DNA of 63,577 nt, counting the filler, from Pelomyxa schiedti (lineage: Eukaryota > Protista > Evosea), in NCBI GenBank assembly GCA_020536535.1. It is 5 parts of 5 records of this genome, joined end to end, with 100 filler letters (N's around TTAATTAATTAA, not from the genome) between each part and the next. Parts side by side here need not be neighbours in the genome. Positions count along the whole stretch, not along the records: positions 31,131 to 60,877 come from JAHLWZ010001008.1; 4 more parts are not named here. One strand, written 5' to 3'. Both the position numbers and the translations under genes were made by a program. This document shows positions 35,188 through 48,266 of the stretch, one piece after another. Numbering within the stretch: the stretch's first letter is position 1; each line of letters starts with the position of its first letter. The notes below the pieces were generated by a model. It did not search any database and was not told the origin of the DNA. It was given only the letters and a program-made list of their open reading frames with translations.

Positions 35188-38100
35188 ATGTCGTCGTCTG
35201 ATCTGTGGCAGCAGGTACCTTGTTGTTGTGCGACCGTGGGTTTGGTTTTTTTTCTTTTTTTTTTCTTGTGCTGGAAAAAGACCTACAGTTGTTCTATTTT
35301 ACCTAAATGCTTTTTTTACCTGTTGCAGGTATTGAGTGCTGTTGGCGTTTTGTACAACGACAACACTCCCAAGGCACTTCATAGGCAAACAAACGAGTGA
35401 CTTTTCCACCCTTTATCTCTTTTTTTTAATCTCTAAATCCAACTAGCTGGCTTGAGGAGTTTCAAAGACTTCCACAAGCTTGGGAAATTGCTGATAAGCT
35501 GTTACGTGATTCGTCAGTTGGGTTAGCATCCTTCCTCTCTCTTTTTTTTTTAAAGAAAATTCCTTCCACAGGCTTCAAGCCCATTATATTGGTGCTATAA
35601 CGCTGCACACAAAGATTAGGCGCGACTTAATGGATCTACCATCAGATGCTTGTATTCAACTCAGAGATAGTCTCCTACAACACATGCTGAGGTGCTGTGA
35701 GTCATGACAGTCGCCATTCCTGAGTTTTGTGTTCACAAATAGGTTTAAAAAGGGGCCCAACTGGGTTTTATCCCGAATTTGTATGTCTATAGCGTCTTTG
35801 GCTTCACAGATATCAAATCTCTGGCCACATCCAGTAAACCAGCTCTTGCAGGCTTTCGGTGTGAAGCTTTTTCTCAAGTACATATTTAATCTGGGTTGTG
35901 TGTAGGTAGCAACGCTGAAACTGTAGGAGTACTTGTAGAACTTCTATCTGCAATTCCAGAGGAAGCAGCACGAAGTAGAGGGCATCTTCAAAGAGAAATT
36001 TCCCGCTCATTTGACGACATGTTGATTGAATCGTGTTCTGGGGTGTTGCAATTTTTGAACCTCTGTGCTCACCATACAAACTCTGCAACCACAACTACTG
36101 GCTCTGGCACGGCAACACCAGGACAAGACACAACTGCCAGCCCTGTACAAATATCTGTGGGTCTTAAGGAAGTATGGATCAAGTGCATAGTATTTTCTAG
36201 ATAAACGACTTTCAATGCTCTCAGATCTTCCAATGTTATTTAAACTGGTTGCGGTTTGTAAAAATTCCGTACGATATTATCAACAACTTTCCCATGACAT
36301 GGGCAGCCTGGGATGTAATCAAAGACACCACACTGTTTTGTGTGTCCTCCCACTTTTTCCCATGTGCGCTAACTTGTATTATTAAGCCAGTGCAGTAGAC
36401 CTAATATGTGGTAAATCTGTTCTTCTAATCTTTCACTTCTCAAGCCTTACAGAGATCGTGAGATTAAGTGGCTATCTTGTTCCACCCAGTGAAATGAAGT
36501 ATGAATAAATTATTCTCCATGGTACTAAATTGGTCAAGTCCAATGAGGCAAAAAGTGTTCACACTTTCTGCGCCATTGATATCGATGTATTCACCATTTA
36601 GACAATCTGGAAAATGTTAATAGCAACCAGGTACCTTCAAGCTGTACAAGCCCAGGACCCCGACTTGGCACATGGCCTGACAAGAATATTTGTTGAGGTT
36701 CTATTATCTTTAATCTGTTTTTACTTTGTTTTACTGATACGACCAACCTCTCAAGATTGGAGAGACATATAGCAACTTTATTGCACAGGTGTGCTATACT
36801 ACTTCATTCCTGTTCCTTATGTATTCGGTTTAGGGATCTCCAGAAGTTCTTCCCATTGTAGGAGTTTTGCTTGAGTGTAGTGCGAACAATGATGAAGATA
36901 TTTCTGGGATGACCTGGCAACATTGGCACTTACTATCCCGAGCTATTTGTTCTTTGGTGAGAACTACATTAGCCATTTACAACTGAAAGTTTCCTTTAGA
37001 GAAGTAAACAAGCACAGACCACACCACAACAGCAACAGATATTTTCTGGTTGTTTCATGAAACTGATCCAACTTTTGATGCAACATATGATGCTTCCACC
37101 TAATTACGAAACACTCGCTTCTGAACGGCAAGAGGAAGTGAAGCACTACCGCAGGTAGAATTCATGACACGTCAGAAGAATCTCATTTTCATAGATATGA
37201 GCTTGCTCACTCCGCCAGAGACGGTTTGCATTCCACTTTATGATGTACTTTTAACGACATAGGAAGCTGTTACTGTAATTACCTTCGACAGCACTATTGA
37301 GTCACTCTCTCAGGCTTTAACCGTGACCCTTGCGCATCATCAAACTTCCTCTGATTGGAGGCCCACTGAGGCTGTATTGTACATGCTGCGATCTGTGGCA
37401 AGGAACTGTGATATGAATTCATCCACCGGTACCACATTATGCCAGGTTTCCTTCTTTCAACATTGTTACTTCTTAACCTGTGAGTAGCTCCTATTGCAAT
37501 TGCCTACCCTTCCAAAAAAAGACTTTTTGCTCTACACGGCTATCATGTGTGTTGGGCGCTATTCCGATTTCATAGCCAAAAATCCGCAATTACTTTCAAC
37601 CCTTTATTCCTTTGTCGTTAACAAGTGTGTGTCCTTTCCAAACCCGAAATAGTTCACATTATTTAGTTTTGGAAACAAAGAACTCGCAAGTGCCTGTGCT
37701 CTCTCTTTCAGACACCTCTGTGAGTCTGCACCTGCAGTGGTGTATACTTCCGTTACATCAATTTTACAGTTATATGATGCTCATCAGCAACTTCCTCTCT
37801 CAAAGACCGATATGGAGGTTTCTTTCCTTTATTATTCCGTTGTGCCTCTTCACTTCTAACCTCGTTGTGTTGGAAATAAGGAATTTTTTATGGGTGTTGG
37901 CTTCGTTGTGTCCACAGCCCCACCACCCGATATTGACAACATCTTGACTCGATTGTATACTCCTGCAGTTTCAAATGTCCACGCATGTGTAGCAGCGTGT
38001 GCTACCGCTTCACACACTACTGCACCGACGGTGACTACTGTCGACAGCGCACAATCTATCCCCACTGCCACATCTCCAGATTCTATACTCGCGCTTTGCA

Positions 38101-39239
38101 TATCCTTGCATAAACTAGGGTGTTTACTGCGTTATGTGAAACCTCAACCACTGGAGGGCCACCCCCTTCCCGGCTATCTTATATTTGAGAAGGTTCTACT
38201 GCATTAAATAAAAGTAACGATAAAAACAACTACAGATTTGGCCACTTCTGGATTACCTCCTCGCACAGTTTGCTTCGTATGTTCAAATTATTGACAATGT
38301 ATGTTCCTGCATAAGGAATGCTGTACATTCGTGCGGCACCAAAACTGCCCCATTGGTACACCAAATAGTGCACTCTGTGTGTTCCTCTTTCACAAAAAGC
38401 AAAAATTCTGCAAGTACTCGGTTTTCCCTATTTGTAAGCAATCTTACACGAAACAGTTTTGTTCACTCTCAGCTTCATTATAAGTACCTTTGCCAAAGAT
38501 TCCTCGGTGCAGTCACCACCAATTGCCGATTTTATCTATAGCATTGGAGAATCATCAAGAATTGTCCTCACATCAATTCGTACCCCTGATGACTTTGCCA
38601 ATCAACCAGGTCTGTCAGAGAAACTCTTCATTTTGTGTGAATTACAGTTCTGGAACAGACGTCATACGAGAGTTCTGTGAACTTATCACGCAATTCCTTT
38701 ATTACTATCCAGGAGTACTAGTTCCCTCTGATCTCCTTCCACCATTGTTTGAGTGGGGCCTGCCCGGGTTCACCTTGTTTGAGCAACAAGCTTTCCAGGC
38801 ACTCAAGTCAATGTACGAGAATCTTTTCCTTGCATGCCGGCCACCGCGGGGTTCTACCACTCCTTCGACTCTGGGTACTCACCTGAACACACTGCTGACA
38901 AATACACAGTCTCAGCTAGGAACGAGATTCGTTCAAGCAATGCTTGCTGGTGTTGCATGGCTACAGCCTTATGCCCGAGTATGTGAGGTCAGGGACCTGA
39001 TACTGTCTGCGCGGAGATATGACTACAACTTATTCGCCCAAATGTGTGCCTCTGCTCTTACTGTGGGACTACCCAAGCCAGGCAGTGGTGCAAGTGCGGA
39101 GGTTGTCAGTGTGCCCAGTGTCATTACTGAGGCCTTTGTGCGGTCAATGAAAGTCTCGCCAGTGGAAAGCGCTAGTGAGGATGCGGAACATGTGTTGATT
39201 GCTTTGGAAGACTTCATACATTCCTGCCGTACCCTGTGA
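35188..39239 (+). CDS. TNPO3: Transportin-3 / Mtr10 / importin-13 family karyopherin
   Basis: VLSAVGVLYND..WLEEFQRLPQAWEIADKLL..GAITLHTKIRRDLMDLP..LRDSLL; LVELLSAIPEE; WRPTEAVLYMLRSVA; helical HEAT-like exons throughout. Confidence 0.8.
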
Positions 39240-39321: not shown

Positions 39322-42300
39322 TCAACAACCTCTCCCACCAGTGAGAGTGCGAATTGTAACTTTTCCGGCGTTGCAAATGAGAGGGATTCCATGGAATTGT
39401 ACGCCGCACATGGAATCGGCATACATACCCTGTTGTAGGTGAGTTAGTAGCGTGGAACATTAAGACAGGGCACTTACATGGTAGACTTCCTCCACACTTT
39501 CATAAGGTACCAGTGCAGCCGGTGGTGCCATGATGCAGCCGGGGAGTAAAAGCCTCTCGCCTAATGCAGCAGCGGCTGGAACATCTAGCAGTTCAAATAC
39601 ATCCTTGCCGTCTTGAAGAATTTCGATGCCTGTCAGCTTCCCGGAAGAAGTGACACCTGGTTTATTGAAGTGGTAAATTAGTGGGATTGTTACTTCTCCT
39701 ATTATGGTCAACCTTTCACGGAGATGGGCTTAATATTACATGTTACTACAACAAGGCGATTCTTGCTTTGGGTTAGAGATGAGAGTGCAAGTGGTGGGGT
39801 AATACTCGTAGTTCCTCAATTGGAATATATTCCACTATGGCACTTACAATTTGACGGCGAGGGAGAGATGGGCCCATATCAACATCCTCAACATACAATC
39901 TGCATGAGAAAACGGATTCAGTGTCAACTGTAAAAATAGAATCTCTTCAACTTGTCAGAGTTGGGAACGCGTCTAATTGAAACAATTTTTCCAATTCGGA
40001 GTTCTACTTCACTGAATTGAAGGATTGGGACTAGATAATATTAATAGGTATGAGATGTGCATCAGTAGACATACTGTTTTTGAGGTTTTTAATTGCAACC
40101 CAATGTAAATTTCCAACGCAATCACCAGTAACAGCAGGGAGAGGTTCGCCAGTCAGATATTCCTTGAATGGTTTGGTACACATAGTATTCATGCTAGATA
40201 GTGCCGTAGGAAGATAGAACGCGAGCAACTCCTTGCCAGCAAAAATATCCTGGGGGAGATGAGGCAACTTCTATCGGAAGGGCAAATACCCAAATTCTTA
40301 TTGTCTTATCAGCTGCTGCTGACGCAACCAGACAAGGATTATCAGCGAAGAAACATACGGATGAAACTTCGTGTGTATGGCCCAACAGGGTTCGTAAATG
40401 TGAAAAGGAGGCTACATCCCATACGCGTACAGTGTGATCCTCTCCGCAACTAACAATCATTCTGCCTTGGAAGTGAAGGTTTAGTTGAAGCTACATTGAG
40501 GATAGTTTACCATCAGGAGAAAATCTGCATCCAAGGAGGCCGGCTGTGTGACCCTGCAATGTTGATAGGGTCTCCCCAGATTGCGAATTCCACACCTGTA
40601 ATTCCTCAGAACAGGTCCAACAATCATAGAAGGTAAAACCTTCACAGTAGTGTCCTTTGATGCCGTTGCAATGAGGGTGCTCCCTGGAGACATATCGATT
40701 GAACTGATCCACCCTTTGTGTCCTTCTAGTATTCCAACCTGTTGCCCTAAAAACCGTGTCATGAAGCACCTCTTTTATTTGGTGAGTAACCATTAGCAAG
40801 TAACCAAATTCTTGCAGAGCCATCTACACTGCCGGTTACCGCATACCTTGGAGATTTCAACTTCCATTAGAGAGCAAAGAGAAGATATACCTTCCATCAT
40901 GTGAGATTGCACAGGAAAATACCGGTTGGGTGTGACCTTTTAGTGTTATAATCTCTTGTTTAGTCTGAAAGGGATTAAACTAAAAAAAAAAGGAGCAGTA
41001 TTATTCACCTTGATTTCCCAGATCTTGGAAGTATTATCGCTAGAAGAGGAGATAAGTAAAGTCCCATCAGGATTGAGCGCAACGGCATTTACCTGAAATA
41101 TATAAACGAAGAGAATAAATACTTCCTGATTTTACCCGCTTTGGATGTCCCGAAAACACAGCCATTTCCTCACGGGAATCATTGAATAATTTGGCCAGCC
41201 TGTCCCAGGAACCTTGCACATATTACTGAATAGTAGGGAACTCGATGCGCAGACCGCTGGCCAAAATGTGTGCCTTTGGTGAGTAGCATACAGATATGAC
41301 CATCGCAGAGTGTTCACTTGTGGAACTGCGAGACGTGGCCGCCAAGGTCTCTGACACAGAATACAAACTTAAAACCAATGTCGGGATTATTGTATTGGGA
41401 AAAAGAAGGAAACCGCATGGCCATATCAGCAGAACCAGTTAGCATGTATTTAGAGTCTGGAGAAATTGCAACGCAGTTGATGAAATGAGAATGGCCCTCC
41501 ACAGTAACCATTTCAGCCCCTTATAACATGAGTATTACTTTGTACAATAGTAAGATAGACCTGTGGTTATGTTCCATATTTTGGCTGTCTTATCAAAAGA
41601 CCCAGTCAGCAAGTAACCTGCAGTGCAACAAGCGCAAGAGCTGACTCTGTCACAGATTAGGACTAAATGAAATTAGTGATAGCAGTGTACCTCTGTACAT
41701 GTCCGGTTAATTCCTGAATGAAAGACCCATCAACTCCCCATTTTGCAATAGTCCTATCTGTGGAGACAGTAAAGACAAACTTCTCGTGGAAGACACAGGC
41801 CTATGCTACAATTAAATAAAATAGATCCGGAGATTAACGAACCTGAACGGCCTTAGTGTGTCTTTTGAGTTCTATAGGTTTTGGATCTATCTTCACTTCA
41901 CTCTTAGCTGACACCAGCTTCCATACCCGAGCAGATTTGTTGTTGGCTGTTGTAGCCAAAAGCCTAGTGTACACAATGAGTTGTAAGAATCAATGGTTGT
42001 GGAATACGTCTGGGTCTCATCAATGGCAATTGATGTTATTTCGTCAGTGTGTGCAGAGAGGAAAGAGGTAGGTTGGACTTTTTGTGCTGAAGAAGGTGGC
42101 ATATCTAGGTGATACACACAAACTCTACCATCCGTATAGCCTACGAAAACAGCAGCGAAGCTTGAAGAGGGATGTAAAAAGGTTGTGCAACAACGTGCTT
42201 CTGTTTGATTTTCACTGGGGGGTGTTTAGATAGGTACGGGTGAATGTACACATACCACATCAGAGTTGCCATAACACTGGAGGAGGGAACATGCCAACAA

Positions 42301-45300
42301 AGGGTATAGCCACAGTCATATGAAACAAAGAGGTATTTTGGGGTTACCCAAACACAACAATTGGCACTTCCACTGTCCATACCAGTACTGGCTGAGGCAT
42401 TGAGGGTCTGAAGTTCAGTACAAGATGATGTTTTCCATATCTGGTATTTTGTTAATTTACTTTTTGTCACACAGCGACATAAGATACCTTCACGAGACCA
42501 CTCCTTTTGTAAGTTGATGCAATAAACTCAGAATCAGGAGAAAATTGGCAACTCAACACCTAAAAAAGATTCAGTGAGTGATATGGCTTGGTTTGAAACC
42601 TCATTGGGTCCAGTCATCTCTCCCAAGTGTTTGCTCTCGAAGATTCTCTTGTTTACCCAGATTGCATGTGGGCTCTGAATCTCCTGTAGTAATTTCATAG
42701 CTGCAGTTGAGACCATAGATGATTCATCAGGTAATGCTGCTGCTTGCTGAATAGTGCATAACGGGTGAAGAGAAAGGGCTGTATAAGAGTGCATGACAAA
42801 TTTTCTGAACAAAAATGAGTACGGAAGAAAGTAGAACTGGGGCACAATATACTTGAAAGACTGTAATTTTTTTGAGACATGATCCAGTGGTATCATATTG
42901 AAGTCTTCAACTAGCATTGGGGCCATATGAAGGCTGCATTTGCATTGAATGAACTGAAGGTCACAAAGTACATTTTCCACAGATTCCCAATCACCTTTAA
43001 CACATTAGAATATTTCAATTAATTAGCCATCCACCTGCTTGCACGAGATGATAAGGTAATTCAGAGATGGCATGTGGGTGTGCTGTTCTCCATATCAAGT
43101 TCCCATTGGAGTCTTTAATGTGAGATTGCTCAAGGAAGTGGTCTGCCAGTTTCTTGTGAATTTCTACTCGTTCAGGTTCCTGTGACAGAAATCGAGCATG
43201 AACTGCGCATTATTTGTACAAAAAAGTTATTGAGGAGACAAGACCATGTACCTGCTTTAGCCAACTGTTGATGGAAGAAATCGACTCGTCCTTCATTGTT
43301 ACTACCGACGTTCCTTAATAGCATCTTCAACGAAAGGAAGACTGCTGTCCATAATGCAGGAGGAACTGCCAGACACTCCACAATGTCGCTCACAAACAAA
43401 CCATGCCTGGCACATCTGAGTAGAGAAAGGGTAGTGCGAACGACATCAGCCCCAATTTCTGTTTGGAGTCTTTTCAGAACAGTTCCCAGAAGATCTGTGT
43501 TGAGACTTGTAAGAGGGGACGCGAACCTTACCCCACTCACCGGGAATACTATCAGGAAATGACAGAATTTTATCAGAGAGCCTCTCAAATGATCCGAATA
43601 GGCGAAGTTCCTCACAGGCCACTGATAAGTATAAAGGATTCCCACTTGCACTTTTGGAGAGAAGTTGTTGCATCTGAAGGGAATCCAACTTTTTGTTATA
43701 AGGAGACAACAGTTGCTCAACGATCTCCTGCCTAGTAGGTGTAACAACTAAAATCCATCAAAATTCTTCACACCTATGTGTCATATCAAGCTCAGGTACT
43801 TGTAATTCAGGAGTTTTGCGTGATCTCAGTACATCAAGGCAATCGCCTGCCAGACAAGAAACAACTATTTTCACGTTGCGTGGCAGAGTGGCAGGCAACC
43901 ACGCAAGCCTGTGGCTATTATTGAAATCTTCCAGCTGGTTCAACGCATCTATGACAATAAGTAACTTATCTCGCTCGGTGGCAATCTGGCTGTATGTTAA
44001 ACATTCGAGTCCATTGGTAAAGCTATACTTTCTGAAGAAGCTGCTGCCAAGTGGCTTCCAACTCGGAAAAATCTGTGAATGTTCCCACTTCAAAGGCGTA
44101 ATAGTGTGCTATTTCATTGCATAATCGCGTGAGCATTTTGGTTATATCAGTACTTGTTGGGCTTCCCCCAATAAAGTGAGGAAGAACAAATGTGTCTCTT
44201 CAAAACGTAAGATGAAATCAGAAGAATAATGTGTAAAATGAAACCTGTAGCTTGCTGAGTAGCGCCTCACAAAATGAGCTAACAAGGAACTCTTTCCTGA
44301 TCCAGGAGTTCCTATTACAGCAAGAGCTCTGGAATTGGAGTCATCCCGAGCATAAGTATCCAGAGCTTCAAGAAGTGATTCTCTGCCTACAAATCGTCCA
44401 CCACGCAACTCGATGAACTCCTCATGGTAGGATCTGGGAAAAGTGGGTGAGGCTTTTTTTTGCTTGACCAAGCCACCTTTCTACTGCTAATGGGCTCCTA
44501 GGAGCTACTGCAGAGGGGTATATTCTTTCTATTGCAGCCCAAACATCAGTCTCAAATTTTTCAGCGAGAGTTTTTAAATTCATTGCAGTTCCTTCTCCTA
44601 TCAAGAGATAAGAGGAAATAGTGACAGGAATATATCCGTACCATTATACTGTGGTGTGTACTCAAATATGGAAGAGAAATTTTCTCTAATTGTAGATTTA
44701 AGCTTAGTCATCTGTTGTACTTTGACTGGTAGCTCGTCTTTCCACTGTGCTTTTACCTGGAACTTGTTACAGAGGATGAAATAAACTGCTATGGGTACCG
44801 TTGATGGCAATGAATCCAAGAAGGATGGATTTCGGAAATAAAAAAGGGAGGCATGGCTGGAGTTGTTCTTTTGATCTATAGCACCACATTGTACCTATCT
44901 GATCTTAGACCAACACTCTTAGGGGTATTGCTCACTTCCATAGCTGTGACACTGAGTCCATTTTGCCACCGGAATTTGATTTTAACTTCATCAGGCACTT
45001 CATTTGGTTCAGGTATCCACCCGTATCTACTCCGTTTTTGGTGATTTGTTTTGAAGTGGGTTTTTCTACCTTTCACCAAGGAAACAACAGAAGACATTCG
45101 ATGAAGAAGCAGTGTCCAGGCAGAGCTTAACAACTTGGTTTTGTTTTGAGTCTTCTTCCGTGATTCCCCATCTAGGGCATGTAAGTGGCGAAAAAAAAAG
45201 CACTTCTTGGTTTGCCTGAGATCCGCTTCAACTAAGTGTATCTTTCTTGCCAGGCACCGCTCCCTGAGTTTGGGAATTACCTGAGATGGTTTGTTTCGTA

Positions 45301-48266
45301 GTTAACCAGCTTGATGGAAAAAAAGACTGGACACATTTTTAATTAAAATATCGCGCTCAGAATTCATGTCCACAAAAGTGGAAGAAAGAAACAAGTTAAT
45401 AGTGCGCCAGACATCTGTATCATCTAATAATGTATTTAGGATTTTGTAGTTTAACCAAAGAATATCTGCCTTCATATCCTTGGTGAGATGACTTTTGTTC
45501 TGCCCCAGTGAAGAAATATTTGACAGGAGAAATCGTTGGGGGAGCTCCAGCAAATGTCATGAACTTCACTCCCAACCTGAGTTTCTGTTAGTAGTCAGAA
45601 TGATAGAAAGTAACAAGCAACCCTTCAGTGGTGGAAGATATTGAAATTGGGTCATCTGACGCCCCTTTTGATATCAAGAATAAAGCTAGTGTGGAAGCTT
45701 CAGCTGCACGTGCCATCTGAACTGCAGTACACGGCCCAACTCGTGAAACAAAAGCATGTACATCTGCTCCACGCTCAACAAGGAGTCGGGCAACGTCTTC
45801 TAATCTAGGGGCTATCATTTTTTTTCTCTCATCAGCCACAACATACCCTTTTGAGGCTGCAAGGTGCAGTGGGGTCAGTCTTTGCTTTGTTGTCAGGTCT
45901 ACGGCCGCCCCTAGATCTAGTAGAATTGTAACAGCTTCAACCGAGCCATTGGTAACTGGTCAAGAGGTTTAAAAGTGAGGGTTTCGGTGAAAGCTTTGCC
46001 TGCAAGGTGAAGAGGTGTATTTCCCGAGATGTTCCGCGTGTCAATGAGGCCCTCCTGCTGAGCTCTAGTTGCAAGAAGCTTGACACATTGTAGACTATCT
46101 ACTTGCCTTCAGAATCGCAAGAGAACGAGGCAAAGAGAGAACCTCCACCGATGGCTACATGCAGAGGTGTTTGCCCAGCAGAATTGGCAAGTAAATTGGC
46201 TCCGCTTTCAAGCAATAACCTAACCTTTGTACAGTTCATTAAATTGTTGTGGAAAGCCGTAGTATACCATATCAAAATCGCTGTTTGAAGCGGCAATGTG
46301 AAGAGGAGTATTGAGTACTGCATTCTACATTATGGTTTCTAATTTTCGCAATGAGTGTAAATACTCACTTTCTTATTCACATCCGCTCCGGCCTGAATGA
46401 GAATTTGAGCTTGTTTGCAATTCTTCCTGAAAGTGGCACTATGCAATGGACTATTTGATACGTTGGACCATAAAGGGTACCTTCCTTCAATTTACCTATC
46501 TCCTCCTGAAGAGGTACTGTTTACAACCTTATTTCCTGGTACTGCCTTCAATAGTAGTTCTAGAACCCCAACATTTTCACTACTGATTGCTAAAGGTTTT
46601 CTTTGGTGAATGAAGTCGACAAGAGAGGAATGAAAACCTGATGAAATGGCAGTAGGGTGAGTGTCCACAAACTTCATCATAAACTCTGAACCTGGGGGAA
46701 GATGTTAGTTGAGTGTTCCACTTTACAGCTTCTGCCATACCCGTAGATACAAAATATTCCAGAGTTGAAATGTTTCCTGCCGAGCAGGCACATTCTAAAG
46801 CTGTTGCAAGATGACCAAAGTCAACTTTTTTGGATACATTAGCCTAAAAATAGGGTAAGAAAAATGGCCAGGGGAAATTACAGTACTGTGAATAGTGCCA
46901 CTGTTGCTGCATTTCCAAACATTGATGCATAACATATTGCCTAAGAGTTTGAATTTAGTATTCATTGAATACAAGGGAAATGAATACATTCATTCCATTG
47001 TCTGAGGATATTGGGTCAGCTCCTGCTTCTAACAAAAGGCGTGCTACCTCGGCATGACCAAAGTAACATGCATGTGACAGTGGACTGGAGGAATTATAAG
47101 GTCAAAAGGAAATTTGGGAATCATCATCACGTTGTTGGGCCAGTTTCGTTGTCATTTACAGGAGAGGGATTTGCTTTGCAACGCAGAAGAGCCGAAGCTA
47201 CAGCTGCATGACCTTTAATCGCACATACATGCAAGGGGGTCTGCTTCTTTCGGTGCGTATTTATGATGTTTACATCTGCTCCAAAAGATAGTATTTTCTC
47301 GACCACGTTTATACTTCCTCTCAAGGCTGCTATGTGAAGAGGGGCCTATATTATGTAAGTCTGACATTGGAGAGGGCAGAATTACCTGACAGTGGTCATT
47401 TAACAGAGAGCAGTTGGCAGAAGCACTATTCACTAACCATGAGAAGATTTCAGCGTTATCATTCCAAGATGCAACATGAAGTGGTGTCCATCCCGGCCAA
47501 GGGAAGGGCTGTCTTGACTTGACAGGTCCTTCACTTGCCACAGAACCTGGAACTTTAACAGTATTTATGTCCAGCTGGGCAGTTGTAAGCAGCCTCTGAA
47601 CATCACGCAACTTACCTGGAGAAAAAAAACATGAGGGAACATTTGTAACCCTCGTGTTGACCTTGATTTACTGCTGCGATTAATCTCGCATCAGGAGATG
47701 TACTGGAGCCAACCTTGCCCTTTTGAGGAACAGGTGGTGCAACTTTTTTTGGTTCCACTGTAGGCTCAACTTTGTTCAGAGGAGGGGTTGGAGCAACAGG
47801 GGGTGGTGCTTTAACTGCGGGAGCTGCAGCAGTAGTTATTGAAGGAGGTTCTGAGTTTGTGAGTTCAGTGTTTTGCACCGCAGCTTTGACAGGCTTGATA
47901 TGAACTGGGCGTGGTATACAAGAGACACTTTGATGTTGTGGTGATTTGCGAGGAACTTTTTTACCAGACACTTTTGGTTTTGCTTATTTATGTGTTAAAT
48001 GCATGGCAAAAAGAGAGACGATTTCCTACCAGACACCTGAGACTTGGCTTTTTTTTTGTTTTTTTTCGACTGTAAGCAACACAAAAAAGAGAAAGAGATG
48101 GGGGAAAAAAAAAAACACAGCGAGTACAAGTGCGTGCCGCGGGTCTCACTCTCTTTTGTTGTGCACCAGCACCCTGCCCTTTATCCATCAACGCAACCAG
48201 AAAGGGGTTCTGGAAGTTGGCAGGCACACTAGACGAACAACCCAACAGTACTCCCAACAAATCCAT
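39322..48266 (-). CDS. Giant STAND NTPase: ankyrin repeats - DUF4062 - NACHT - WD40 repeats - EMAP-II/Arc1p-like tRNA-binding domain (TEP1/NWD-like)
   Basis: Ankyrins (GWTPLHVASW, QTPLHVCAIKGH, GQTPLHVAI); DUF4062 WRTINLFLSSTFVDMNSERDIL..DLR|WGIT; Walker A VIGTPGSGKSSLL; Walker B LLIVIDALNQL; GNPLYL; RVDFFHQQL; many GH..WD repeats; terminal ELRIGKIVSIRRVPNSDKLYVEDVDMG..NRLVVVTCNIKP..GVTSSG. The 5' start is approximate. Confidence 0.8.

Follow-up and report, generated by a model that had tools for sequence, protein, structure and literature searches.

The window analysed here, a stretch of 63,577 nucleotides of the genome of the amoebozoan Pelomyxa schiedti (assembly GCA_020536535.1; all positions refer to this stretch), carries on its minus strand a large gene at 39322-48266, within the part that comes from JAHLWZ010001008.1 (31,131-60,877). 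The gene has 53 exons and 52 introns, and its 2194 codons contain no internal stop. Median intron length is 44 nt, and the GC-AG type accounts for three of the 52 in the gene model (45999-45956, 45469-45424 and 45215-45172). Exons were searched singly and matched P0001, the translation of a 2116-nt RNA contig, whose cluster includes the GenBank counterpart of the gene, KAH3743239.1. This 2188-aa protein is labelled 'Telomerase protein component 1' and differs from our 2194-aa model solely at residues 40-52. Here, we show that the gene joins a TEP1-like core to N-terminal ankyrins and to a C-terminal domain of the EMAP-II/Arc1p type, that the fusion of the WD40 repeats with this last domain is a real, transcribed gene, and that it is conserved in distant amoebozoans.

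The protein matches the Pfam families Ank, DUF4062, NACHT, AAA_16, APAF1_C, WD40 and tRNA_bind above their curated cut-offs. Following the minus strand, the gene model starts with a hydrophobic segment and a low-complexity stretch rich in lysine and proline (47705-48266); a similar N-terminus is found in L001, P0006, P0007 and P0008. The ankyrin array that follows (about residues 140-625; 45666-47704; Ank_2, E = 1.6e-66) occupies the position of TROVE-vWA in TEP1. Pfam found ankyrin families only, and no TROVE, in residues 1-700, while the Arcella and Heterostelium controls were positive. Residues 681-888 (44518-45409) form a DUF4062 domain, a TIR-like NADase domain also termed NIR or TeTIR, which matches PF13271 (41 bits) and the TIR domain of human TEP1 (11gz_A, E = 2e-35) and lies directly upstream of NACHT. 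The NACHT/STAND NTPase (43704-44396) has intact Walker A (starting at 44312) and Walker B motifs. It precedes a helical, winged-helix, APAF1_C-like region (42690-43703; PF17908, 27.9 bits for a cut-off of 22.8) and about 14 WD40 blades (40091-42626), i.e. two propellers by strand count. The EMAP-II/Arc1p-type domain, spread over five exons (39322-40030), consists of an OB core (residues 2030-2127) and a C-terminal subdomain reaching residue 2188. The protein thus has the hallmarks of STAND/NLR-like proteins: a NACHT with Walker A and B, a helical domain and C-terminal repeats. An earlier reading made from the sequence alone (hereafter the sequence-only reading) had described a TEP1-like DUF4062-NACHT-WD40 core with ankyrins in place of TROVE, and the Pfam searches bear this out. 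One other match, P0002, was discarded as a spurious hit to Ig repeats. At the start of several members of the family a short hydrophobic segment is followed by a Lys/Arg-rich stretch (window 47980-48266; L001:1423-1520), possibly a targeting signal or an auxiliary RNA-binding region.

The junction between the WD40 repeats and the OB domain is a phase-1 GT..AG intron of 44 nt (40031-40074, minus strand). Its removal links the last WD40 strand to the OB exon in frame. Retaining it would end the reading frame at the stop codon 40033-40031, and downstream of the preceding stop no ATG opens the OB frame independently. The locus is covered by contigs of three single-cell RNA runs from the same sample and study and of a DNA run; the RNA contigs were compared with the window over 39700-45699. 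All three RNA runs have contigs (2116, 991 and 2134 nt) with the joint 40030/40075, which the DNA run lacks. The 2116- and 2134-nt contigs begin near 42.2 kb, within the WD40 region. In all three runs the contigs with this joint also include the following two OB joints and extend 306-315 nt past 39713, which corresponds to the last two exons and 19-28 nt of 3' untranslated region. Around the junction, the RNA-derived P0001, the GenBank model (P0004) and our model are identical. Both the in-frame splice and the lack of an independent start codon, as put forward in the sequence-only reading, are hence confirmed, and the translation given there is correct. The link between ankyrins and DUF4062 (45424-45621, minus strand), which that reading had singled out as needing transcript support, consists of a GT-AG intron (45621-45577) and a GC-AG intron (45469-45424) flanking a 107-nt exon; it is backed by the ends of RNA pieces, loose ends, unbroken X1 coverage over 43.9-45.7 kb and a frame check rather than by the joints listed. 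Two gaps interrupt the RNA coverage, one near 42.8-43.0 kb and one near 43.5-43.95 kb, and none of the Pelomyxa RNA contigs spans the entire gene. The intron at 41964-42007 is kept in the X1 contig and removed in the X3 contig, and single-letter differences between RNA contigs and DNA occur at 42103, 44827 and 44978 (alleles or strain differences).

The complete order of ankyrins, DUF4062, NACHT, WD40 and EMAP-II is found in seven organisms: Pelomyxa, Mastigella, Balamuthia, those represented by P0006, P0008 and P0009, and the source of a 449-kb metagenome contig (L001), where all domains keep this order, with an identity of roughly 30-55% for each segment. With the DUF4062-NACHT core as a query, the top five of 623 matches all end in PF01588. 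They are Mastigella eilhardi (a transcript open reading frame, ORF, of 2111 aa), Balamuthia mandrillaris KAL6066503.1, P0006, P0008 and P0009. Since the fusion recurs in Mastigella and Balamuthia, its range covers Evosea and Discosea. This conservation across two amoebozoan phyla strengthens the sequence-only reading, and the six other organisms rule out a recent shuffle confined to Pelomyxa. P0006 and P0008 each take up their contigs as one ORF. A single ORF contains the whole architecture in contigs L002 and L003 and in the Mastigella Trinity assembly, and in L004 one unbroken genomic frame runs from NACHT to the OB core, with ankyrin pieces upstream. Pelomyxa, L001 and Balamuthia share the phase-1 intron in the linker between WD40 and OB. 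Mean pairwise identity among five full-length members is 50% for DUF4062, 45% for NACHT, 41% for the second propeller, 39% for the OB core and 34% for the ankyrins, and the C-terminal subdomain of EMAP-II is weakly conserved (23%). Among the matches seen there is one copy per organism. The homolog searches were bounded by a length window and by word sharing. Word-based searches with the OB region were uninformative: one found no long relatives and another only the query itself, although relatives exist. A metagenome scan with an OB alignment yielded 50 loci; NACHT, WD40 or ankyrin sequences lay close to none of them. A feature search of the Atlas returned generic WD40 clusters only.

To place these proteins we used a tree of the core, made with IQ-TREE and excluding OB and ankyrin columns. 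The ten ankyrin-type proteins form one clade (100/99), which is sister (99/97) to a clade with the TROVE-bearing TEP1 of animals and amoebae (100/99). Orthology with TEP1 is rejected, because the ankyrin-type proteins lack TROVE and their clade is not nested in that of TROVE-TEP1. True TROVE-TEP1 also exist in Amoebozoa (Arcella, Heterostelium and others). Hence, 'TEP1' in GenBank is a name wrongly given to a paralog, and the annotation is corrected here for Pelomyxa and Balamuthia. No sampled protein has both TROVE and EMAP-II. Some proteins of about 1500 aa inside the TEP1 clade, from Acanthamoeba and Echinamoeba (P0026/P0141, P0035, P0039), have DUF4062, NACHT and WD40, with no TROVE detected. 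The OB domain requires two state changes on the core tree, one basal gain and one loss. By this reconstruction the OB domain is ancestral in the ankyrin clade and was lost once. The OB-less relatives (P0012, P0015 and P0045) have no hidden downstream OB exon; the truncated P0010 was left out of the scoring. Metagenome contigs contain OB-less relatives with the ankyrin-DUF4062-NACHT-WD40 order in long unbroken ORFs (L006:246-5405, L059:2727-7883, L057:4001-9589), which are natural controls for the function of the domain. One of these contigs comes from a Tara marine sample, and the P0045 cluster has 17 members. The ankyrin-EMAP-II proteins are an ancient amoebozoan subfamily of TEP1 paralogs. 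The sequence-only reading knew of no description of their architecture, and our search of the literature, which reached few subscription journals, found none of the ankyrin-DUF4062-NACHT-WD40-EMAP-II order.

The tail matches tRNA_bind (PF01588) with 72 bits for a cut-off of 27 and covers positions 1-95 of the 96 in the profile. Its AlphaFold2 (AF2) model (pLDDT 88.8) has 1ntg, 1euj and 4r1j as best Foldseek matches (human TyrRS-C, EMAP-II and Arc1p-C; E from 8e-15 for 1ntg to 9e-13, TM 0.76-0.79). The tail is therefore a full eukaryotic EMAP-II domain, not merely an OB of Trbp111 size, and the resemblance noted in the sequence-only reading holds at the level of both profile and fold. It shares the fold of OB and C-terminal subdomain, and apparently much of the 3'-CA pocket, with the domains of AIMP1/p43, TyrRS, plant-type MetRS, Arc1p, Plasmodium tRip, Entamoeba synthetases and bacterial Trbp111. 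Yet, the host here is a predicted STAND NADase, neither a synthetase nor a synthetase cofactor, and some of the features associated with tRNA binding are missing, as discussed below. The ligand of the Trbp111 and Arc1p OB folds is the single-stranded 3'-CA of mature tRNA (PMC11286949). Trbp111 refuses ends that are extended or carry a 3'-phosphate, and the 3' diol is not read; Trbp-type OB folds refuse CCA-less ends and may accept aminoacyl-tRNA (PMC11286949). We placed the pocket residues by motif spacing onto the data of PMC11286949, so that Arc1p D226, S227, K269, V271, M273, R274, S278 and M281 map to D, K, K, I, V, K, S and K in Pelomyxa. The Ser of the A76 pocket (Ser2097 in Pelomyxa; 39648-39646, minus strand) is invariant in the seven OB-bearing members. 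The C75-stacking position is Arg or Lys in five of them, and four, which also have the Ser, retain the A76-stacking Met; in Pelomyxa Lys2100 stands where this Met is expected. Five of the seven family domains group together on an OB-only tree (95/85), which is compatible with monophyly of all seven without demonstrating it (p-AU 0.40). On this tree the branches of the family are long relative to synthetase-type domains, and the donor of the domain could not be named. An ORF on another contig (L014:1-1818; contig GC 0.70) encodes a RING/TRAF-like zinc-finger region followed by a full EMAP-II domain; it is either a further fusion of EMAP-II with a non-synthetase protein or the product of unspliced read-through.

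At the other end of the core, the DUF4062 domain belongs to a type that acts as a TIR-like NADase in human TEP1, in bacterial defence proteins and in Dictyostelium TEP1 (bioRxiv 10.64898/2026.05.01.722283, 2026.09.04.749371, 2026.09.21.753143). The nine aligned proteins of the ankyrin clade all retain the human TEP1 residues F902, S905, R914, R942, W943, C959, R976 and E1008. Glu791 of Pelomyxa (44938-44936, minus strand) aligns with E1008 of 11gz_A and is catalytic by this alignment. Pelomyxa has the RWG loop and retains the whole essential set of human TEP1 (F902, R914, R942, C959, R976) together with the pocket-lining S905, deviating only at two variable positions, R954 (Gln) and the partly dispensable R908 (Val). 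NADase activity of this domain is likely on these grounds. The three preprints did not identify the activator of the eukaryotic proteins, and their main texts mention neither tRNA nor ankyrin. The TeTIR preprint reports WD40 or TPR as the only C-termini and TROVE as the sole N-terminal extension.

The protein can be compared with several known systems. It resembles TEP1 in its DUF4062-NACHT-helical-WD40 core, in its essential NADase residues, in its position as a sister clade and in bearing an appended domain of RNA-binding type. Yet, TEP1 is a vault-associated NADase ordered as TROVE-vWA-DUF4062-NACHT-WD40, whereas ankyrin-type proteins lack TROVE and vWA, start with ankyrins, end in EMAP-II and form their own clade. 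NIR/TeTIR proteins of bacteria, both Avs and NLR-like defence proteins (PsAvs2, Swarozyc), also couple a DUF4062 NADase to a sensor, and Avs are STAND proteins with C-terminal repeats. They detect phage proteins by means of TPR or auxiliary domains, whereas the Pelomyxa gene is eukaryotic, intron-rich and has ankyrins and EMAP-II in addition. Apaf-1 shares the STAND NTPase, the APAF1_C helical domain and the two C-terminal WD40 propellers, but it has NB-ARC and CARD where the Pelomyxa protein has NACHT, an enzymatic effector and the additional ankyrin and OB domains.

These observations suggest, tentatively and with a risk of failure slightly above the chance of success, that exposed 3' ends of tRNA gate the protein, which would act as a STAND switch with an NADase output. 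The domain order, the expression of the fusion, its conservation and the intact NADase and NTPase motifs are directly supported; the later steps are inferred. At rest, the two WD40 propellers might keep NACHT closed, as in Apaf-1 and as expected from STAND biology. The terminal EMAP-II domain would catch the single-stranded 3'-CA of mature tRNA or of tRNA-like RNA, by analogy with Trbp111 and Arc1p. Capture would be weak, at micromolar affinity or worse, and probably aided by the adjacent propeller or by avidity. Occupancy of the OB domain might then lead to oligomerisation of NACHT and to hydrolysis of NAD+. The opposite polarity is conceivable too: bound tRNA would hold the switch off, and lost or damaged CCA ends would turn it on. 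The ankyrins probably serve to bring in a partner or to determine location. We favour this sensor because the fusion is transcribed and retained in seven organisms across Evosea and Discosea, because the OB core is conserved near the level of the second propeller and above the ankyrins, because the pocket keeps its Ser in all members and its Arg/Lys and Met in most, because the NADase residues are all kept and the TeTIR of Dictyostelium TEP1 is active, and because the sister TEP1 clade bears another RNA-binding domain, TROVE. The sequence-only reading had proposed the sensing of tRNA that is uncharged, cleaved, or of viral or symbiont origin. Direct chemical sensing of uncharged tRNA is weakened, because Trbp-type OB folds skip the 3' diol and may take aminoacyl-tRNA (PMC11286949). 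The signal would instead be the exposure of free tRNA ends, as a proxy, and the domain is not expected to tell uncharged from charged tRNA chemically.

Several observations weigh against a tRNA-gated switch. In Arc1p the OB needs the basic middle domain as well, and in isolation it fails to bind tRNA (PMC11286949). No basic linker or region adjoins the OB domain here, and only about 10 residues separate it from the last WD40 blade. The NPKKKxW patch of synthetase-type EMAP-II domains, proposed as a tRNA-binding motif (PMC12840782), is absent from all seven members; a KK-x-W/F motif is found in 11 of 12 eukaryotic comparison domains. The pocket Met is replaced by Lys in Pelomyxa, Mastigella and L001. 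AF2 also models about 14 WD40 blades, but the arrangement of the domains is not fixed (pTM 0.49). The three OB-less relatives retain all catalytic residues. Finally, several Glu-bearing TeTIR domains have weak or no activity in vitro, which is why we grade the activity of the Pelomyxa domain as likely rather than shown. With much of the pocket apparently kept and both the basic patch and the basic linker missing, the family seems to have largely retained the surface specific for 3'-CA and dropped the non-specific basic ones. Such a pattern fits a low-affinity reader of tRNA ends aided by propeller or oligomer avidity. It also fits a domain drifting toward protein binding.

The persistence of OB-less relatives with intact catalytic sites also suits another view, in which EMAP-II, through tRNA or a protein partner, would only position the protein near synthetases, ribosomes or vaults, and a different ligand would activate it by binding the WD40 propellers. 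OB folds of EMAP-II usually raise the local concentration of tRNA or set localisation rather than signal (PMC11286949), and the packing of the OB domain on the propeller is not fixed in the model. Against it stand the conservation of the domain in two phyla, where it follows the sensor repeats immediately after a short linker, and the lack of a synthetase-binding GST-like domain among the Pfam matches of the Pelomyxa protein. We regard this tethering role as rather unlikely, while giving it serious weight.

Plant NLRs with integrated domains, such as RRS1-WRKY, carry a foreign host-protein domain after their sensor repeats. The C-terminal placement of EMAP-II behind the propellers is reminiscent of them, and the domain might be a decoy, mimicking synthetase or Arc1p-like tails, that effectors of bacteria or giant viruses would bind, cut or modify and thereby trigger STAND activation. 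The loss of the basic patch, the altered pocket of archamoebae-type members and the long OB branches are consistent with this. Yet, the amoebal fusion is ancient, fixed in architecture and present as one copy per organism among the matches seen, the same domain recurs across two phyla instead of varying between lineages as in plants, and all members retain the pocket Ser. Nor was a helper receptor seen as a pair: the head-to-head neighbour is a phosphoesterase gene and no partner STAND gene adjoins. A recently integrated decoy, as entertained in the sequence-only reading, is weakened because the fusion is old and stable, and decoys in general seem an unlikely account of the domain. It is improbable that EMAP-II serves as a cleavable signalling tail, released by a protease as in AIMP1 or TyrRS, or that it is a fading appendage with no role in switching. 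Caspase does free EMAP-II from AIMP1 (PMC11286949), the C-terminal subdomain is poorly conserved and one subclade lost the domain, but the linker is very short, no conserved cleavage motif was seen and the OB core is conserved at the level of the propeller. A split gene, with the WD40 gene ending at the intron stop and the OB domain as a separate gene, has next to no chance: the in-frame stop inside the intron and the single sample behind all RNA runs would allow it, but the joints in three RNA runs and the orthologs with single ORFs (L002, L003, Mastigella) or an unbroken genomic ORF from NACHT to OB (L004) rule it out.

It is possible, if rather doubtful, that the sensor takes a fuller form: an NLR-like receptor, as old as Amoebozoa, that would read tRNA 3'-CCA ends directly through a domain borrowed from synthetases and answer by destroying NAD+. 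GCN2, a signalling kinase with a HisRS-like domain, offers a parallel, i.e. a signalling enzyme with a domain taken from the synthetase world, there to read tRNA. In the amoebal protein the corresponding parts are the OB fold of EMAP-II and a predicted NADase under STAND control, and its reading of tRNA is a proposal. If true, there would be a GCN2-independent route from tRNA status to cell fate, and the binding of RNA 3' ends would be a common input of the TEP1 clade, through TROVE in TEP1 and EMAP-II here. The gene is a candidate for an amoebal receptor in immunity or starvation and places the EMAP-II domain outside the synthetase world. The ankyrin-type sister clade of TEP1 bears a domain whose ligand and pocket, for the 3'-CA of tRNA, are structurally known. 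The switching of a TEP1-type NADase by RNA is therefore testable with a defined ligand, mutants and OB-less controls.

The neighbouring genes show no synteny with the relatives tested. About 140 bp upstream, head to head with the gene, lies a calcineurin-like phosphoesterase gene (PF00149; 48406-49173, plus strand), which was not found beside the relatives tested. Some 80 bp beyond the stop codon an intron-rich gene ends tail to tail (about 35800-39239, plus strand); it resembles members of the importin-beta/transportin-3 family, but two of its ORFs have no Pfam match. A TLC-domain (ceramide synthase-like) gene (PF03798; 59955-60665, minus strand) lies near the end of the contig.

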